64,000 bases of DNA from Podarcis bocagei (GCA_964188305.1 OZ076890.1); one strand, 5' to 3'; positions 29,501 through 50,682 are shown, numbered from the stretch's first letter. Notes: a model not told the origin generated them from the letters alone. Translations and numbers: made by a program.

Positions 29501-32500
29501 TTGCTAGTAGTGTGGGTTCTGTGGCGAAATTGCCACACTCAGTTTCTGTAGATTTTTGAGACTAGTTAGGGATTCTTTCACTCCTTAGATTAAAGTGTGT
29601 CGGTATTGTAGGATTTGCTGCCTGTATATCTATTCTGTCACCTTCATTTCATATAATAAACAAAGCTTTCTTTAATCCTTTTGTGTAAGAACTTCCTTCG
29701 GGCAGAAGATTAAGTGTAGACACATAGTCATAACAGATGTACACCATAACTCTAGCAAAAGATCCTAAAACACTTGGCAGTGTGTGTATGAATACATGTG
29801 CATGCTGGACATGCATGTGGGTTCAGATACATAGTTTGTAACAGTTACAATATTTTAAATGTTTATTGATCAATGAATAATGAAATAAAAAGCTTTAATT
29901 TGTTTTTTTACTTCTTAACTAGCATGCTACCACAAAAAAGACACTGCAACTTTATAATTCACAATAAAACATTCCAATAACTTACATTTGCTCCAAGCTT
30001 GATGGATATTGCAGGTGGTTTCTTTGCAACCTGTGTGCCAATGGCAAACCCAAACTTGGACATTTTGGCAGGAGCAGGCTTTGTGTCGGGGTCGTCAGTT
30101 TCTTCATCAGTTGCCGGCTTCTCCACNNNNNNNNNNNNNNNNNNNNNNNNNNNNNNNNNNNNNNNNNNNNNNNNNNNNNNNNNNNNNNNNNNNNNNNNNN
30201 NNNNNNNNNNNNNNNNNNNNNNNNNNNNNNNNNNNNNNNNNNNNNNNNNNNNNNNNNNNATGGGAGCAGCAACCTCATAAAGCACTGTTATGCAGAGGAG
30301 ACTTTTGCACTTACAGTGTCAGCACCTCCACAACTGTTTATACAGAGCACACTGTAAGAACATAGACATATAGTGAAGGGAGCTCCAATCACGTGACTAA
30401 TGCAGAACAAAATTCTTCAGTTACACAAAAATAAATCAAAATAAGTCTTTAAAGCCACAGGGCACCACTATTACTACTGCCAAGGGCAATTCAGATCAAG
30501 GTACAGCAAGTTATTAAAGCACACGTCTTTATTGAATAATTTTAGAGGTCTTGCTTTGAACAGCCCCCATTTATCTTAGATTATAGTTGTAACATTGATA
30601 TTTAAAGCACAAATGCTTACATCACAATAAAGTTCTTAAGGTGGAATCTAATTGGTGTATTTGCACTCATGGAACAGCTTTTGATCTAGCAGATCACAGG
30701 TGCCTCTGCTAAGGAACAACCGTGTCCATTGTTTCTCCCTACAACAGTGCCCAGAAAAACTGGACACAGAGAACTGGGAGTCCTGCTGAATAGCAAGGAA
30801 GGTGGTACAGGAAGAAATCAGCAAGAAATGCCTCCCCTCTAATTTGCAGAGGCATCTGCTGGAACAAAAGCCCTTCTGCAAGTGCAAAGGCACTAATTGA
30901 ATTCCATCCTTTGACTTTAAGAAGTTCAGTGAAAAAAGCTTGACATCTTTTAAGAATATAGCACTTGTATTTATATAGCACTTTGTGGGTTCAAAGAAGG
31001 AAATCAGGATTAAAAATATGTGACCACCATAAAAAGTCTAAAATGACACATGGCTTAAGTTTTGATGCTGAGGGCAGGGAAAAAGAAGAGGAAATGGCTG
31101 CAGTCCTTGACAAATTCACAACCAGTGTGCAACTGTACTCAAATTACAGGGATCGTTACTCAAATTAGAGTTGTTTTAACCAGCAAAAAAAAGGAAGTCT
31201 GTCCATCTCTTATTATTCTATTCAATTCATTCATTATACTTAGTTAATCCCAAAATGTTACCTAGCCTAGTCTACAGTGGGAATTGTATAATACTGCAGG
31301 TGGGTAGCACCAATATTGCATCTCTTCATGTGCACTGGCTAACTTTATACAGATTAACAGGGCACCTTCCTACATTCTTAGAAAAGGATTAGACAAATTC
31401 ATGGAAGGTTATGAATGCTACTAGCCACAACGGCTATGTTCTTCCACAACACTTGGAAGCAACATGCCTCTGAATATCAGTTACTGGGAATTGCAGGTGG
31501 TCAGAGCACTGTTGCATTCAGGTCCTGCTTACAGTCTTCTCATAAGCATCTGGATAGTCATTGAGAGACTAGGATACTGGACTAGATGGGCCTTTGGACT
31601 GATCCAGCAGGGCTCTTTTATATTCTTAAGACATTAAAAGTTATAACGATACATAGAGAAGATGGTTTTTAACACCTGCTTAACACTGTTTTGTCTCCCC
31701 AGGCATTTTTCAGAACATTGATATCAACTGTATGCAAACATGCCTCTGTTCATTGCGCAATTTTACTGGATTCATTTTTATTTTATGGTACACTCCTCTG
31801 ACTTTTTTAAAAAAATATGAAAGTCAATAAACATCCTTAAAAATACGGAAAACTGTAATGCCAAATTGAGAATATGGGCATATGGTTGAAAACGTTTAGT
31901 TAGAAACGTAACTTTTAGTCCTAAAAATTGACACGGCGAAGTTTCAGAAGAAAGGAACTACTGTAGCATTATTGCTGTAAAGGAATAGTGTGTGTTTGTA
32001 GTCAAACCCTGCCCATGTCCAGCTACACGAAAGCCCCTGAGAGTCCAGTGTGGCGTCTATAGAGGACTGCAGCCTTGGGCCAATGTTGCGCTAAATTTTG
32101 AAGGGACTGGCATTATTTACACGGGCGCCCATCCGCTTTACGAAACAGCTGCACTTCAGCAGCGCAATGTTTCAGGCCAAGCGGCTCTTTGAAATCGTTG
32201 CCCTGCCACAGGGCGTGATATACAGTACTGTATATTAGGCACTACGACGTCTTCCACGAGGGGTTCGCACTCCCGCCCAGCCACAGGGACGGGGAAGAAG
32301 CGGAATTATGAAGGATACAGAAAGCCGAGGCACCGGGAAATGCAGCATTCAGGCAGCCCGGGGGGGGGGGGGAGGGGATTTTGGTGAGTCTGCAGAACGA
32401 CCTTCACCCACGGAAGCCACGGGGCGTCAGAAGCCGCGCGAAAGACGAGGCTGCGACTTGGCTCCCGTCAGAGGCAGCGAACTCGCCTCCGGTAAGCAGC

Positions 32501-36737: not shown

Positions 36738-38024
36738 TTAGGACACATCTTCCCACCAGTTTTTCTGTGTTTGCCGCCTGGAGAAATTTTGTGCAAACTG
36801 CTTGTGTGCCTTTCTTTGACCAGCCATTTTTTCATGCAACTTTGTTTTCTTCCATGTGTCAATTTGCTGCCTTGACCAGGAAGAAGTATCCACAAAGCCT
36901 TCGTGTTTTCTTTGTGGAACAAACTGCAGAGCTTCCTTCCAATTCCCAGTATCTTTCAGTGTTAATAAGATGCGCATCATTTGATCCAGAGTGAGATTTT
37001 TGGCACCCTCCGCCCATTGCAAGCACCTATCCAAAGGAAGGCGTGCTGTTGCCAAGTCCAGCCGTTTTGCATTAGCAAGGGAGAGTCCAGTCTTCATTGA
37101 TTTATCAACTATTGATCCAATTATATAGATCTTATCATGCTCAAATGTTTTCATCACATTGGGAGAATCAGCAGTTAAGTAGACAAGTTGATCTTTTGGA
37201 AAGACTTCAACATAAGACTTTTCTGTCACAGTCACAAACAACTTGTCCCATGCTTCTCCGTAACGTTTGACAAATTCTTTGTGATACGGACCACCTGCTT
37301 TGAGATTACAATAATGCAAATGAAATGGGTCCAAAGCTCTACGATTGGCCCCTTCACATTCCATCAGCTGTTTCACTGTATTCTCCATTTCTCTGCGTGA
37401 CATAGAATTTTCGTAGTTCATATCATACACCAGAGGCTGACCAAAGATCATAGACTGGGCTGCTCTCCAGTTGTACATGGCATCCTGTGACCTAGTCCAA
37501 AACTTAGGGAGAAATGTATTTGGTAGCTCACCACCAGCATTTTCCTGAGCGTTTAGCATTCGTTCCTTGTTTGCTTCATTTCGTTTTTCTTTCTTTTCTC
37601 TGTCAGCTTTCTTCCTGTTTTCTTTTATAGCCAAGAATTTTAAGTACTTCCTTATGGAACTCTTGGTGGGACATTCATTTAAAGTCTTGAAATCTTCTTC
37701 GCTAATATTTTCTGGAACAAGTCTGCCCGATAGTCTCCACATCTCAATAAGTTCCCTAGTAACCGCTAAAGGAGAATCTTCTTCACTCTGTGATGTTCTT
37801 TCAGTGGCTTCTTCTTGCTGCGCAGACCGCATTACATGTTTCCATCCATCCAAATCTAGTTTCTCAGTAGCACTCGGTGAGGAGTCCTTGTTTAACCAAG
37901 CCGACAAAACCAAAGTTCTACAAGTTATGACTCTGCTGGGCATTATTAAAAATAATCTCCTTTTTGTCCCATCTGATGCTGCTAATTGGAAGACAGATCT
38001 TCTAATAATATTAAATAGATGCAT
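36738..38024 (-). CDS. TRMT10C: tRNA methyltransferase 10C, mitochondrial RNase P subunit MRPP1 (428 aa, single coding exon)
   Basis: Trm10 SPOUT motifs YLTADS, YIIGSIVD, ARLPLD, KNLTLDQM, W..AL.FVPQRK. Basic N-terminal presequence. Acceptor ttttctctgtataattgcag near 38068. Synteny with PCNP. Confidence 0.96.
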   Translation of the reverse strand: MHLFNIIRRSVFQLAASDGTKRRLFLIMPSRVITCRTLVLSAWLNKDSSPSATEKLDLDGWKHVMRSAQQEEATERTSQSEEDSPLAVTRELIEMWRLSGRLVPENISEEDFKTLNECPTKSSIRKYLKFLAIKENRKKADREKKEKRNEANKERMLNAQENAGGELPNTFLPKFWTRSQDAMYNWRAAQSMIFGQPLVYDMNYENSMSRREMENTVKQLMECEGANRRALDPFHLHYCNLKAGGPYHKEFVKRYGEAWDKLFVTVTEKSYVEVFPKDQLVYLTADSPNVMKTFEHDKIYIIGSIVDKSMKTGLSLANAKRLDLATARLPLDRCLQWAEGAKNLTLDQMMRILLTLKDTGNWKEALQFVPQRKHEGFVDTSSWSRQQIDTWKKTKLHEKMAGQRKAHKQFAQNFSRRQTQKNWWEDVS

Positions 38025-40429: not shown

Positions 40430-41060
40430 CGTGCGCCTACGCAACTCTATATATTTGAAGGTCCGTAATGCCGTTCACATTCTGCTATCCCAGCACTACA
40501 CCCGCTCAGAAAATATTTTCGGCGCCATCCTAAACAATCACCTCAAACAACTGAAGCTCCGCGCGCTCCACTCCTCCGCACATGCCCGGTCCGGCTCCAA
40601 TCACCTTCCCGCCGGAAGTTGGTATGCCGATGCTCCCTCCTCCCCCCCTCGAATGGTTCCGCTAACGTCACTAGGCCATTCATCCACTTCGGAAGGAGCT
40701 GAGCAATCCTTGCCACTGGTTGGTCGGTTTCCGAGCCAATCACGGGGAGCTGCAAGAAGAGCTTCGCGACTGCCCTCTTTCTGCGCGAAAGTAGCTTGTG
40801 CGCATGCGCTCCGCATGGGTCGGTGGCCGCGCTGCAGCTGCTTGTCTGAGCCTTCCACCTCTCTCAGTCGCCATGAGCTTCTTGCTTCCCAAGCTCGGCA
40901 GCAAAAAGGAGGTGGATGAGGCAATCAAGAGCGTGGCCGAGAAAGTCCTGGTCCTTCGCTTTGGCAGAGATGAAGATCTCGTCTGCATGCAGCTGGACGA
41001 TATTGTGAGCAGGCGAATTTTGCTCCTTGCAATCGCATTCCCCCCCCCCTCGCTCCCAGT
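40430..41060. promoter_or_regulatory. Bidirectional CpG promoter TRMT10C(-)/TXNL4B(+)
   Basis: CpG-rich. ETS CCGGAAGT (~40612), CCAAT (~40596, ~40736), NRF1 TGCGCATGCGC (~40799). It is the only CpG island 5' of TRMT10C. Confidence 0.8.
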
Positions 41061-44498: not shown

Positions 44499-45467
44499 TG
44501 CCCCACTGAGAGAGGAGTGACAGGGAGAGGAATATGAACTGCTTAAAGCTGATGATTCCACGTCTTCTCCAAACATATGCCAATTGCATTTTGAAAGCGA
44601 ATGGAAGAAAGGAGCTGAGACTGGTCTTTTTTGTACACAGGATCATATTGGTCAGCCTCAGAGACAGACTTTCATTAATTCATTTTTCAGTGGAATTGAC
44701 TGGAATTGCTTAGGCTGCGACTTATTTAATTCTAATATGTCAAAGAAGCTGCAGTAGAGTAATATGTTCTTGTTCTAAATAAATGCTTTCGGGTTATATA
44801 AGGATATAATTAACAAGAATCATTCTAGAGCTGCCATGTCCTGTAGAAGCATCCCGAAGAAAAGGTAAAAGTGGTGACTGGATTTTTATTCTGAAATGTT
44901 ATAACTGCTCCCACTATCTGTCCTAACTTCCCAGCCATCAACTGGACACTACATCTTCAGAAATATAAGGTTTTTCTAGTTTCACAACCCAAAATGGGAA
45001 ATTCTCTTTTGGAAAAGGACGGAGGGTGGGAGTTTAAAAGTTAAAATTGGTTTATTTAAAAAATAAATATTTTAAGATTTTAAGAATTAAACTCAACTGT
45101 ATTGTGTCAAAGTATGATGATGCAACAGGAAGGATGAATAAGTAAACCCATCTTTCAAGCAAAGTTTTCTCATTCTTTTTGCTATGCACTGAAGTTTCCA
45201 CTCAAAATTGCAATGTATACAGTGATTTATTCAGATTAAACCCCAGACTTTTCAAAGGAAGGAGGGAAGTTTTGCCAGAAACAAGGAACAGTTGTTACAT
45301 TTACATTCACATAAAGTTTCAGAAATGGAAATGGGACAACAGATATTAGACTGGTAATGGTGTGCTCCATATTTAGATAAAGTACTTTTACCTCAACGAT
45401 AAGCTTAAGCATCGAAGCTAGTACAAAACTTCTATTAGAAGAAAAAATGGGTATGAATAACAGATGC

Positions 45468-46505
45468 TTAACTTGTTTTCATTGATTTGCTCCTTGTAAG
45501 AATAGGTGAACGATTGAACGGTTGTTTGGTGAAGATTTTCAGTGCATTCTTAAGATAATTGAAAATGGACTGTAGACTAGAGGAAGGAGCCAGGCTATAA
45601 TTTTCAGTTCCTGTGGAGACTGTAGGGCAATCCACTTTCACCATAAAGCCTATTGACTTATCTAAAGGTTCACTGTGTGATACCCACTCTCGGCAATGTT
45701 TCCATATCCAGGCCTGCACCTGGGAAATGCCTTGTGTCTGGTGCGGTGTGTGGTGTGTGGAGTCAATAAGTGCAACAGCACCTACTTTGTTCATTACCTC
45801 CGAAGTTCTCTCCATGAGGAGGTTGATGAAAACCAAACCTCCATAGCCATGGGCAATGAAAGCCACCTTTTCCGCTGTGCTCTTTGAAATGAAATGGTCC
45901 CAAACGTAACTTGTATGCTCTTCAGGACTACTGCTCTCTCTCTTTGGGACTGTCAAGGGTAATTGTAGTGGACATGTGGAGTCTTTTTTCTCAGACAGGC
46001 TTAAGCATTCTTGTTCTGTCTTCAGTTCAATGAAGTTATCATTGGGATTTAAAACAATCACTCCCCAAGAGCACTGCAGAGCCTTTATGATGAATGGTAT
46101 TTGAGATCCATGTTGGAGGCCTTCATGAACGATGACTTTTCGTCCCCACTGACCTGCACGAAAAGGTCCCTTGTCTTGAAGGAGGACGACTAGAGTTGAG
46201 CAATTAGTTAAGGCATCCTCACTCATGAAAAAAAAACTGCAACGTTCATTGTCTGGAGCATCTGTTGGGATGTAAACCTTTTGCAGTTTGCATGTCTTTT
46301 CCAGGAGCTCGAAAACATACTGCGTAATTAAGTATCCAAGAAATTGATAATGTCGGTGATTAGCATGTGAATCTTGATAATCATAAACAAAAGGTTCATT
46401 GGTATCCATATGCCTAAGCTCCCCATTTTTATTAAAGTCATATTTGAGAGTTTCTGGACATTCTGAACTATTTATTAGTTTTCTGAAGCTCAAGTCTTCA
46501 TTCAT
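45468..46505 (-). CDS. FAM172B: FAM172/ARB2-family protein, FAM172B ortholog, intact 345-aa ORF
   Basis: Family motifs FRAGQW, GLQHGSQIP, GVIVLNPNDNF, SSSPEEH..YVWDHFI, FIAHGYGG, AVALIDS.H, CREWV.HSEPLD. Lies between TRMT10C and SENP7, as human FAM172BP does. A possible upstream exon 47124-47056 would add MNWSQ. Confidence 0.9.
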   Translation of the reverse strand: MNEDLSFRKLINSSECPETLKYDFNKNGELRHMDTNEPFVYDYQDSHANHRHYQFLGYLITQYVFELLEKTCKLQKVYIPTDAPDNERCSFFFMSEDALTNCSTLVVLLQDKGPFRAGQWGRKVIVHEGLQHGSQIPFIIKALQCSWGVIVLNPNDNFIELKTEQECLSLSEKKDSTCPLQLPLTVPKRESSSPEEHTSYVWDHFISKSTAEKVAFIAHGYGGLVFINLLMERTSEVMNKVGAVALIDSTHHTPHQTQGISQVQAWIWKHCREWVSHSEPLDKSIGFMVKVDCPTVSTGTENYSLAPSSSLQSIFNYLKNALKIFTKQPFNRSPILTRSKSMKTS

Positions 46506-48098
46506 CTGTGACCACTACAAATAAAACAGACAGATCATGACATAAACAAAAAACCATACATTTCTTAAACAACTGTATTCAAGTTCTTGTAAAAATATTG
46601 TAGAAAATCTTAAAATATCACTGTTCAGGTGGGGACAGCAGTAAAAATAACTTTAACTTAAATCAGTGCAACTTAAAAAGTGACAAATATTTCTGTTTGT
46701 TGCATTTGTATCCTGTTCCATTTTCAAAGTAGCACAGAATGATGAGAGGTTTATTAGATGTTTTAAAGTACTGGTGAGGCCCAAACCCACTAAACTTCAG
46801 TGTAAAACTTTAGTAGATACCTTCAGATCATTCTCTAAACTGGGTAATATTAGCCACCACTGTAGTAACAGATAAAAAGTAGATCAGTTTAAACCCAGGA
46901 TATATTTCTAGTATACTTCTACTTGACTTTTATCAGTATCCAGTGAAGTAGTTCTATTGGTGCCAAGACTTCTGGCTGTGAAGCAGTCTTTCCCCTCCAT
47001 CTCCTCTCCCCTTGTGCCCCCTGCACAGACACCCCTAAATACAGAACATACTTACATTCATGTTGCTTGAGGATAACAGCAAAGGCTTCTAGACAGTTCT
47101 GGATATTTTGCTTCAGAGATCTGTCTGAACAGAGTCAACTATTAAGATGTTGTAGTTCAGGACTTATTGTTTCCTAATCAAGTATAGCTATGGTGCCAAA
47201 TTTAAGGGCAAACAATTTACAAACTCAGTTGTGCACCACATGCTAAAAATAGGCATGAAAACTGATAATGTGGGGAAGTGCTTCCTAATCGTTGTATTGA
47301 GATTTCCTTGTTCTGTGCATTTCATCCAGTTCTTTAATTCTGTAAACACCATACTGAATTCTTAAATTGCTCCCAAGTTAAAACTGCCATACGTGCCCTA
47401 TATGGCCAAAACACACACAACATTACACCTATGCAATCCACACAACTTGAAATGTGCACTGTGTAGAATATTGTATGCCTACTCCTTATGAATGTGATGT
47501 ATGAAACTAACCTTGATACCTAGGGGGTTGTAAACCTACATATCCCACAATACACATTAAACATCTACTTGTGCGTCGCAATTTCTACTATTCAACAGAA
47601 GTTATTTTCAAAGAAGCATTATAGGACTGCACCCTTATTTATATTAAGAAAATTACATGCAGAAAGATATAACCAAAATCATATACACACACGCAGAAGA
47701 GGAAGCAGCAAACTCAGGTTTCCAATTTTATGGAACTCCCAGATAAATGTAGACCCTGTCCCTGCCTTTCCTCCTCCCATCTTTCCTCCTCCCTCCTTCT
47801 CAGAAGCCTCCTGGCTATTATCAAGACCTGAGAAAACCAGACATAGGGAAACTCCTTCTTATAATTCAGGCCCCTTATCTGTTACATTCCTTTGGTGAGC
47901 ACAGAAAGAAAAGGCCATTAGTGGCGAAACAAAGCAGGGACTGAATTACTTCAAGCATTTGATGGATTGCAGGATACAAAAACAGGGAGGAGCTTCAAAG
48001 GGTATCTGAAAACTTTCCACTAACTTCCTTTGACACATATGAAAAAGCAGGCAATATCTATCAGCAAGCATTTCTGTTTACAGAAGCAAATGGCATTA

Positions 48099-48337
48099 CA
48101 GTGGACGCTCGGGTTGCAAACGTGATCCGTGCGGCAGGCACGTTCGCAACCCGTAGTGCCACGTCTGCACACGCGCGGGTTGAGATTCAGCACTTTTGAG
48201 CAAAGTGAGATTTAGCGCTTCTGCGCATGCGCGACTGCCGGAACCCGGAAGTAACCCGTTCCAGTACTTCCGGGTTTTGGCGCATCCGTAACCTGAAAAA
48301 ACGCAACCTGAAGCATCTGTAACCCGAGGTATGACTG
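48099..48337. mobile_element. Tigger-like MITE family B (CpG-rich)
   Basis: TA-CAGTGGACGCTCGGGTT...AACCCGAGGTATGACTG-TA. Confidence 0.82.
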
Positions 48338-48712
48338 TAGTTATGTTACATACAGACTAGAAATACATTTCTAAGATTCTACACCCTCTCTTTTGATTTT
48401 CTGGTGAATGCTTAAGACATTTTTTTATCCCAGCAGACAGTTTAACTGTATTCTAATTTTATAGTTTTAACTGATTTTTATCTCTCTTGTATTCAGTTAC
48501 TTAGAGATTATTGTAATTAAGTAGTATATAAATTATCAATAAAAAAAGCCCACAAGATACACAAGGTGAGAAAAAAAAACTGCTCCTTTTCCCTTATGGG
48601 GTACCCAAGAGCCCATATAGTCCTTTTGTAGGTTCTCTATTGGTAGGAGAAAATAACAGACCAACCAGAGAATATTGAGAATAAAAGCAACTAGGAAGCC
48701 TGATCTTTATTA

Positions 48713-48928
48713 AAGTTTGGACGATTGGGTTGCGAACGAGGGCCGTGCTGGATGCACGTTCACAACCCGCAGCGGCGCATCTGCACACGCGCAGCTTGCA
48801 ATTCGCTGCTTCTGCACATGCGCGACCACCAAAACCTGGAAGTAACCCTTTCCGGTACTTCCAGGTTTCGGCAGGTCCGTAACCCGAAGAAATGCAACCT
48901 GAAGCATCTGTAACCCGAGGTATGACTG
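48713..48928. mobile_element. Tigger-like MITE family B
   Basis: Collinear with 48099-48337, ending acctgaagcatctgtaacccgaggtatgactg. Left TIR decayed. Confidence 0.78.
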
Positions 48929-49299
48929 TGTGTGTATATAGATAGATATAAAAAGACCTTAAAATTATATAACAGTAATCTCCTCATGCCTAGCTGTTTC
49001 TAGAGACAGAAGTGAAGATTTTAATATTGCTGGGATTGAGCACGACTGTGTCTACACCTCCAAGCAGAAAGAAAGTGTAAGCCAAGTCATATGAACAATA
49101 CTGTAGTTGAAATGGGTGAGAGTGCATCTTTAGGAAGAGAAAATGAAAGGAAAACATGATAGCAGTTAGAGCTATGCTTAATTAGCACAAAAGGGCAAGC
49201 AACAGGAAACAGGTGGCTGGAACCCAGCCCAGAAAGACATCTCCTTGCAGGGCGTCACTTCATCTCTGATACTGTATTCCGTTTTTTCCAAGGGGCAAA

Positions 49300-50320
49300 C
49301 CAGTAACCTTTTTCTCCCTTCGCTTGCGCAACACCCACTTTGCGAAAAGGCAGGCAAGCGCGCTGCAAAGCTCACTCAAGAGTGGCTTACTATTTTTCTT
49401 CCTTTAAATGAACCAACGCAACCACCCCACATGTTAACTTTTTAAAGCTTTGTTTTCCCGTTGCAGTGGGGGAGGGGCGTGAGTGCATGCGAGGGGAGGG
49501 CCTCATCAGCCAGCCCCGGAGAAGCAAAGCAGGGCGGAGAGAGGCCCGAAAACCGAGGAGGCTGATGCGCAACGCCCGGCACGTGGCCGCCTGGCTCGGC
49601 TTCCCCACCGAAGAGAAAGCGGCGGGGCGGCGCCTGTGCCGGAAGTGCGCAGGGCAGACCAAGCGGCTCCCGGCGCCACTCCGGATCAACAAAGCCGAGC
49701 GCGCTCGGAAGGGTGCCGTGGCGTTTCCGTGGCCAGGTGAGAAGAGAGAGGGGCGGGTGGTGAAGGGGCCGGACCTACCCCGGGTTTGTTTTCTTTTCCC
49801 CGGAACACACCCGGATCCGCTTCCTTTCTGAGGGATGCTGGTCCTGCGGTCGTGATTGCATTTTAAATACTCCCAGGCACCATAAATAATGTGCTGTTTG
49901 TCCCATCAGAGGCGAGCGGGTGGGATCGGGGGAGGCTCATCTGTGTTTTTAATAGTAGTTGACGGCGTAGCTCTCTTGCCAGTGTGCCTTTCTTACTCCC
50001 ATGTAAACGCGTTTAGGATTGCAGTCTCAGTCCCTGTGCATGCTTGCTCGGAAGGAAGCCGGGCTGCTTTCGGTTGGCGTCCACGTCCTAGTTAAACGTA
50101 CACAGGGGGTTGTAAATCCCCAGGTTTTTTATGTTATGCGTATCGCGAAGTGTCCGACCTAAACGACTAAACAACAACAACGAAGCCCTTGCCCACCTGT
50201 CTTACAGAAAGGAGTCCTTGTTGCTGCCGCAGCGAAAACAACCGAGAGCCTTTTATTGCCTTGGAAATTAACGGATTTTTATGCCATCAGCATTTGGGGG
50301 CTCGGGCCATTTCATCAGAT
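49300..50320. promoter_or_regulatory. Bidirectional CpG promoter FAM172B(-)/SENP7(+), including SENP7 exon 1
   Basis: CpG island. E-box CACGTG (~49580), GC box GGGGCGG (~49624), ETS CCGGAAGTG (~49639). Plus-strand donor CAG|GTGAGA after 49736. Confidence 0.78.
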
Positions 50321-50682
50321 GCATGGTGTGTTATCCCCGGTTCACCCAGTCATTAATAATAACAGGAATAGATAAAATACTGTAAACATTGAGGCAGTGC
50401 AAAAGATGCAGTCTAGATGTACAGATGTTTCCTTGCAAGGTTCAAGTTCACAAAAAGACATTGATTTAGCTATGAAGCTTTTCTTATTACTTCGTCTCCA
50501 GACCAAGAAAAGGTTTGACTGTGGCATTTTGTCATGTCAAGCATCTAGCTGTTAATTACAAAAGTCTTGCTGAAAGAAGGGTGAGACTCTTGTTGTCAGG
50601 TGATTTTTAGAGAACAACCTTTTTTACAGTAACATGAAGCTTTTGGTTTTTGTCCCCCCCCCCCCCCAATTGTTCATTGATA

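Follow-up and report, generated by a model that had tools for sequence, protein, structure and literature searches.

The open reading frame at 45468-46505 (minus strand, as are all FAM172B coordinates below) in a 64,000-nucleotide stretch of Podarcis bocagei DNA (the window) is the principal exon of the FAM172B (ARB2BP) ortholog in this lizard, a gene that is already annotated and transcribed. Our preferred explanation, to which we assign a probability of about three in four, is that FAM172B is a two-exon gene descended from an ancient retrocopy of FAM172A, and that its product is most likely a non-catalytic pseudo-hydrolase acting as a binding module. An intron-less retrocopy of the multi-exon FAM172A/ARB2A would have inserted beside SENP7 and stayed in that gene block since, a small upstream exon would have been recruited later in squamates and some other lineages, and the Arb2 α/β-hydrolase-like fold would have been kept with the family's structural invariants, the serine-hydrolase elements being lost.

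Structure and transcription of the lizard gene

The 345-codon frame is uninterrupted from ATG to stop and carries the motif FIAHGYGG at residues 216-223, both as read in an earlier note on this DNA, with the codon for Gly220 (GGC) at 45846-45848. In a profile search the exon-2 ORF, which as one contiguous frame was the query for every protein search, matched the Pfam Arb2 family (PF22749) with an E value of 1.3e-58 and a score of 198.8 bits (cut-off 26.8), ORF residues 15-281 (45663-46463) aligning to profile positions 3-260 of 260; an E value of this order indicates it is not a chance ORF. The FAM172B protein of Podarcis raffonei (351 aa, starting MNWSQMNEDL) is 96% identical to the window protein.

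Expression is evident in public RNA runs of a close relative (about 2.3% diverged), aligned to 44600-50500 of the window (runs X1, X3, X9 and X23). A 2544-nt contig of X1 (depth 30.5) spans the whole ORF and the sequence downstream, and then joins 46514 to 47056, skipping 541 nt bounded by CT..AC on the plus strand, i.e. GT..AG on the minus strand; this junction, 47056^46514, was seen in one contig of one study. The good splice acceptor claimed earlier just upstream of the frame is thus real and used. Exon 2 is also covered by contigs from two further studies (X3 and X9) and by raw reads of X23, and most of the intron (46570-46963 of 46515-47055) has zero coverage in all four runs, which come from four studies. 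In the stranded raw-read run X23 all first mates are minus-strand, which by the commonest library convention would denote plus-strand RNA, a convention uncalibrated for this run as SENP7 exon 1, the sole plus-strand exon in 44600-50500, had no X23 reads; a sense FAM172B transcript is favoured by the GT-AG junction and by coverage that breaks off at the exon boundary.

At the donor of the upstream exon the sequence reads ...caacATGAAT|gtaagt, and exon 2 starts TGGTCACAGATG (TGG TCA CAG ATG...), in frame, so that the upstream ATG, with A at -3, adds MNWSQ before the MNEDL of the ORF. Other annotated squamate FAM172B proteins start MNW or MSW, and each of the six further squamate loci successfully mapped, a set without the gecko, has the same acceptor and phase. 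Anolis has Leu at the internal Met position, so that translation there has to begin at the exon-1 ATG. The coding sequence probably comprises two exons, of 2 and 348 codons, with the exon-1 ATG (47059-47061) as the true start. Exon 1 (47056-47121, the outer limit being the end of the contig) consists of 5'UTR and the two codons ATG AAT, and the coding part of exon 2 (45468-46514), delimited by the contigs and the squamate comparison, provides codons 3-350 and the stop. The single exon of the earlier note therefore fails for the whole coding sequence, two codons lying in 47056-47121, and nearly holds for the 348 codons of exon 2. Contigs of X1, X3 and X9 give the 3'UTR a minimal extent of 45129-45467, and it may extend further: X9 coverage ends near 45129, a candidate AATAAA lies at 45051-45056, and the X1 contig continues past 44600 but may have absorbed the convergent DIM1 gene, which leaves the 3' end uncertain.

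In P. raffonei a SENP7-like Peptidase_C48 gene (1117 aa) lies head-to-head upstream of FAM172B and a DIM1-family gene is convergent downstream. Mapping of this annotation places the divergent SENP7 first exon at about 49565-49736 (plus strand), where an RNA contig stops at 49736|gt and carries a spliced-on loose end, inside a CpG island (49251-50250, GC 0.59-0.62, CpG o/e 0.86-0.89). The head-to-head SENP7 and the CpG island of the proposed shared promoter are thus in place, but no FAM172B 5' exon was seen nearer than 2.4 kb from the SENP7 exon, the one observed lying in CpG-poor DNA (CpG o/e 0-0.1), and a promoter common to both genes would be possible by way of an unseen 5' exon in the island. 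Between FAM172B exon 1 and the island, 48146-48342 and 48540-48933 are CpG-containing repeats where the contigs show numerous loose ends and internal joints and reach a summed depth of hundreds to thousands in all RNA-type runs; they look like a dispersed, widely transcribed SINE-like repeat. Elsewhere in the window an N run at about 30100-30260 (assembly gap or masked) appears as X in an ORF at 30009-30365.

Also in the window are DIM1 exon 1, TRMT10C (36738-38024, minus strand) and a BTB/zinc-finger gene that would fit ZBTB11. The order of genes in bowfin, SENP7-like, FAM172B, DIM1, TRMT10C and PCNP, is that of the window, and this SENP7/DIM1/TRMT10C/PCNP neighbourhood is kept in Podarcis, in six other squamates and in bowfin, with a SENP7-like gene upstream of FAM172B in catshark; the synteny check across amniotes and fish proposed in the earlier note thus came out in favour of orthology. 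The DIM1-family gene itself (TXNL4B-like, 149-172 aa) runs from 40870-41004 (plus strand) to about 44480, between TRMT10C and FAM172B and convergent with the latter. Its placement is kept from bowfin to squamates, and at its 3' end it may overlap the FAM172B 3'UTR.

Distribution, selection and origin

A database search returned 686 relatives, of which the best 120 are all named 'putative protein FAM172B/ARB2BP' and span squamates, turtles, crocodile, birds, a marsupial, many placentals (including primates) and amphibians. An exhaustive representative search and name look-ups located FAM172B orthologs with HGYGG in catshark, bowfin, milkfish, elephantfish, arowana and a catfish. FAM172B is therefore conserved across jawed vertebrates and is not specific to lizards, and intact orthologs from catshark to primates likewise rule out that it is newly intact in them. 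The LLQDxG and HGYGG signatures are both present in the window protein and in 115/120 and 119/120 orthologs, respectively. One exact 362-aa sequence (P0321), which retains LLQDHG and HGYGG, is filed both as chimpanzee/bonobo ARB2BP and as UniProt ARB2P_HUMAN, so that, judged by the name list of this exact protein sequence, the human ORF is intact. The contrast drawn earlier between an intact lizard gene and a human pseudogene does not survive these intact orthologs from shark to primates and the names of P0321: the human 'pseudogene' status of FAM172B is a matter of label and naming only.

Several deviations were seen among the orthologs and their annotations. The elbow reads HGHGG rather than HGYGG in zebra finch (P0071) and egret (P0085). 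FAM172B is 267 aa in hippo, porpoise, beluga and sperm whale (P0336, P0337, P0341 and P0343) and 219 aa in dolphins; these short proteins retain QD and HGYGG and could reflect a truncation or an alternative start in the lineage. Gene models in Hemibagrus (P0260/P0275) and Hipposideros (P0352) have FAM172B fused or confused with TRMT10C (mitochondrial RNase P protein 1), and in bowfin and teleosts FAM172B is often misnamed 'ARB2A/FAM172A homolog', misannotations which we attribute to tight synteny. In the literature, FAM172B/ARB2BP was not the subject of any paper found, and it appears in gene lists only, from GWAS/eQTL loci and expression tables to a turkey muscle heat-stress table.

When exon 2 of the window and of seven squamates was aligned by codon, dN/dS came to 0.20-0.40 in all 28 pairs (NG86). 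With the window as partner, the bootstrap intervals are 0.14-0.28 for Pantherophis, 0.19-0.40 for Elgaria and 0.24-0.51 for Rhineura; the closest pair, at 0.40, has an interval of 0.18-1.15 and too few changes to inform. Between the window and the RNA-source species about 1% of sites differ in the coding sequence and about 3.5% in the 3'UTR, the coding sequence being about threefold less diverged. Squamate FAM172B is under moderate purifying selection, as the earlier note had supposed, with no value near 1. The pseudogene suffix of the human symbol and the cetacean and hippo models of only 267 aa might favour a retro-pseudogene whose frame has stayed open by chance, but over 120 species, spanning about 450 million years, retain an intact ORF, the dN/dS intervals are far under 1, the mRNA is spliced, and coding sequence and 3'UTR diverge unequally. 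We consider neutral drift refuted by the intact ORFs throughout gnathostomes and the dN/dS values, its residual probability being negligible.

In a maximum-likelihood tree of 79 proteins all sequences with Gly at position 220 (n=20) form one clade (SH-aLRT 100, stem 0.43), within which the window protein groups with squamate FAM172B. The sister of this clade is vertebrate FAM172A (98); the two are joined with support 95, and the Ser-bearing homologs of lamprey, cnidarian, mollusc, annelid and crustacean fall outside both. The amphibian-dog path is 0.93 for FAM172B against 0.34 for FAM172A, i.e. FAM172B evolves about 2.7 times faster.

The catshark FAM172B coding sequence is one exon, residues 20-367 of bowfin FAM172B are encoded in one exon, and the sole intron of squamate FAM172B is the 5' one, the Arb2 domain being intron-free. 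Conversely, gar FAM172A occupies 175.8 kb for 566 residues, and in the homolog of the annelid Capitella the stretch corresponding to the lizard exon is interrupted by at least six introns. Given intron-rich FAM172A and outgroup genes, the intron-free FAM172B domain indicates a derived loss of introns, all at once, and retroposition is the most parsimonious explanation; the old retro-duplicate of the earlier note is thus the best reading of the intron data. Such an event would have occurred on the gnathostome stem, before the split of sharks and bony vertebrates, with later recruitment of 5' exons, and since the insertion would predate the gnathostome radiation no poly-A remnant or target-site duplications are expected. 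A duplication on the vertebrate or gnathostome stem falls at the time of the vertebrate genome duplications, and FAM172A and FAM172B could on these grounds be ohnologs, the introns of FAM172B having been lost secondarily. This origin is quite unlikely in view of the absence of every domain intron at once in shark, bowfin and squamates, set against the intron-rich FAM172A and outgroup genes, and the human FAM172A and FAM172B loci are not known to have paralogous neighbours, which also counts against it.

Fold and catalytic positions

With the ORF as a single-sequence query, a search of PDB sequences gave noise only, and a family profile was needed. The AlphaFold2 model built from an 85-sequence alignment (pLDDT 90.9, pTM 0.89) matches the Arb2 domains of Clr3 (VIA Z 20.3) and Hda1 (Z 18.4), with lipases and esterases next (Z about 16). 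In this model residue 220 separates strand 213-219 from helix 221-232, the topology of a nucleophile elbow, and the family profile H-S-x-G-G aligns to GHS(81)LGG of SABP2 (E 8e-4) and to AHS(77)MGG of Bacillus subtilis LipA (E 7e-3). Gly220 thus aligns to the FAM172A serine, to SABP2 Ser81 and to LipA Ser77, and the claim that a Gly occupies the hydrolase nucleophile position is upheld by the alignment and by the model, which places the Ser-to-Gly change at the elbow.

Position 220 is Gly in 20/20 and 119/120 FAM172B sequences, and Ser in 4/4 FAM172A and 60/61 distant relatives. At positions 110-111 (46173-46178), after the third core strand, FAM172B has Gln-Asp (20/20 and 115/120) in place of the His-Gly oxyanion-hole motif of FAM172A and relatives (Gly in 60/61). 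Position 303 (45597-45599), after the last core strand, is His in 59/61 relatives, while among the 120 FAM172B sequences retrieved it is Tyr in 84, His in 27, Cys in 4 and Arg in 4, the Tyr303 orthologs being chiefly squamates, including the window lizard, turtles, a crocodile and birds. Asp248 (61/61 relatives), Ser249 and His251 are kept in FAM172B and relatives alike, and both acid candidates, Asp248 and Asp282, are retained in the window protein. As judged from the topology, residues 111, 220, 248 and 303 would cluster in one pocket, with Gln110-Asp111 at the probable oxyanion-hole position.

The window protein has none of the nucleophile (Ser, Cys or Asp), the oxyanion His-Gly and the loop His of an active serine α/β-hydrolase. 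With Gly as nucleophile, QD for HG and Tyr for the loop His the hydrolase mechanism would not be available to lizard FAM172B, and the catalytically dead protein proposed earlier from the Gly is made more probable by the other two replacements; these aligned residues indicate that FAM172B in general probably lacks hydrolase activity. The nucleophile and oxyanion elements appear to have been lost in its common ancestor, position 303 then being free to vary. The invariant Gln-Asp replacement suggests the pocket has been remodelled, not merely decayed, and conservation of Asp248, Ser249 and His251 makes some pocket chemistry or ligand binding possible. An enzyme with an altered mechanism, in which for example the invariant Asp111 acts with Asp248 and His251, would make use of both the invariant novelties Gln110 and Asp111 and the three kept residues, and some α/β-fold enzymes do function without a Ser nucleophile. 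We regard this as very improbable, as the nucleophile and the oxyanion Gly are gone, as is His303 in sauropsids, position 303 varies freely between Tyr, His, Cys and Arg, and dN/dS values of 0.2-0.4 are rather relaxed for an enzyme.

As a probable pseudo-hydrolase, FAM172B can be compared with several better known proteins. SABP2 and B. subtilis lipase A have its fold and the aligned Sm-x-Nu-x-Sm-Sm strand-elbow-helix motif, lizard FAM172B differing from them in the nucleophile (Gly), in QD for HG and in Tyr for the loop His. Among α/β-hydrolase-fold pseudoenzymes, the NDRG proteins, neuroligins and ABHD5/CGI-58 have the nucleophile replaced and are kept for binding roles; they resemble FAM172B, a probably inactive fold under selection, and belong to subfamilies unrelated to it. 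The best structural matches, the Arb2-like domains of Hda1 (PDB 5j8j) and Clr3 (5ikk), are likewise non-catalytic α/β-hydrolase-like modules, serving dimerisation and histone binding, but they are fused to a deacetylase domain, unlike FAM172B, share only 14-20% sequence identity with it and have lost their catalytic motifs independently, the H-S-x segment of Clr3 being missing altogether. The HDAC Arb2-like domains are without the triad-plus-oxyanion signature (PMC11878206), which the Ser-bearing ARB2 members have in full.

In FAM172A-type Arb2 proteins from cnidarians to vertebrates Ser220, His303, Asp248 and HG are almost perfectly conserved. This suggests, on residue conservation, that these proteins may be genuine hydrolases, and that the description 'inactive Arb2' fits the HDAC-type domains instead. 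A search of the literature on FAM172A as an esterase or hydrolase found nothing usable; a 2018 PNAS paper on Fam172a reportedly describes an esterase-like serine motif.

Relation to FAM172A and possible function

FAM172A/ARB2A is a vertebrate cotranscriptional regulator associated with CHARGE syndrome. FAM172B is its ARB2-family paralog, as previously proposed, the two having in common the Pfam Arb2 domain (PF22749), about 40% identity, the fold, their position as sister clades, and the residues G118, W120, N153, N155, H219, G222, G223, D248, S249 and H251. They differ in the pocket, where FAM172A has AHSYGG with Ser (the motif cited in the earlier note, here verified), the HGSG motif and His303, these being replaced in FAM172B by Gly, QD and a position 303 that varies. 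A basic insert of about 35 residues (with a bipartite NLS) occurs in frog and dog FAM172A and in none of the FAM172B sequences aligned, and frog FAM172A also begins with a hydrophobic leader and ends in EEL, both features absent from FAM172B, which instead has a conserved basic C-terminal tail (SPIxTRS then K/R). The FAM172A gene is multi-exon and very long, in contrast to the intron-free FAM172B domain.

These likenesses and differences bear on the suggestion that FAM172B is a second AGO2/chromatin partner, bridging AGO2, CHD7 and the spliceosome in the way of FAM172A. Domain family and fold are common to both, the FAM172A ARB2 domain binds AGO2 and mediates homodimerisation (PMC10205598), and the ARB2 domain of Hda1 binds histones (PMC5036196). 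However, the FAM172A domain is split by the bipartite NLS and an adjacent CK2 site that mediate AGO2 nuclear import (PMC10205598), and FAM172B, which is without this insert, cannot import AGO2 in FAM172A's manner. It also evolves about 2.7 times faster than FAM172A, and the literature on FAM172B/ARB2BP is without any reported interaction, so that we think this role unlikely.

A soluble pseudo-hydrolase would instead bind protein or ligand in the remodelled Gln-Asp pocket, act through the Arb2 dimer interface, or both. A bolder possibility, in our view a distant prospect, is that throughout the jawed vertebrates, and in humans too, FAM172B serves the FAM172A pathway as a functional pseudo-hydrolase partner. 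It might then form a heterodimer with FAM172A via the Arb2 dimer interface, or alternatively hold a basic peptide or small ligand in the Gln-Asp/Gly pocket, in either case tuning AGO2 or chromatin-linked splicing. Were this so, the human 'pseudogene' ARB2BP would be a misclassified protein-coding gene.

FAM172B itself is already known, as an ordinary, annotated pan-gnathostome gene. A gene selectively maintained for about 450 million years, with an intact human ORF, makes the pseudogene label worth re-examining. The gene presents a clade-wide, concerted replacement of two catalytic elements and relaxation of a third, which FAM172A and the invertebrate homologs have complete. FAM172A and FAM172B would thus constitute a natural active/inactive pair, raising the question of whether FAM172A-type proteins are real hydrolases, and in models of FAM172A in CHARGE syndrome outside rodents the paralog FAM172B could interfere or compensate.
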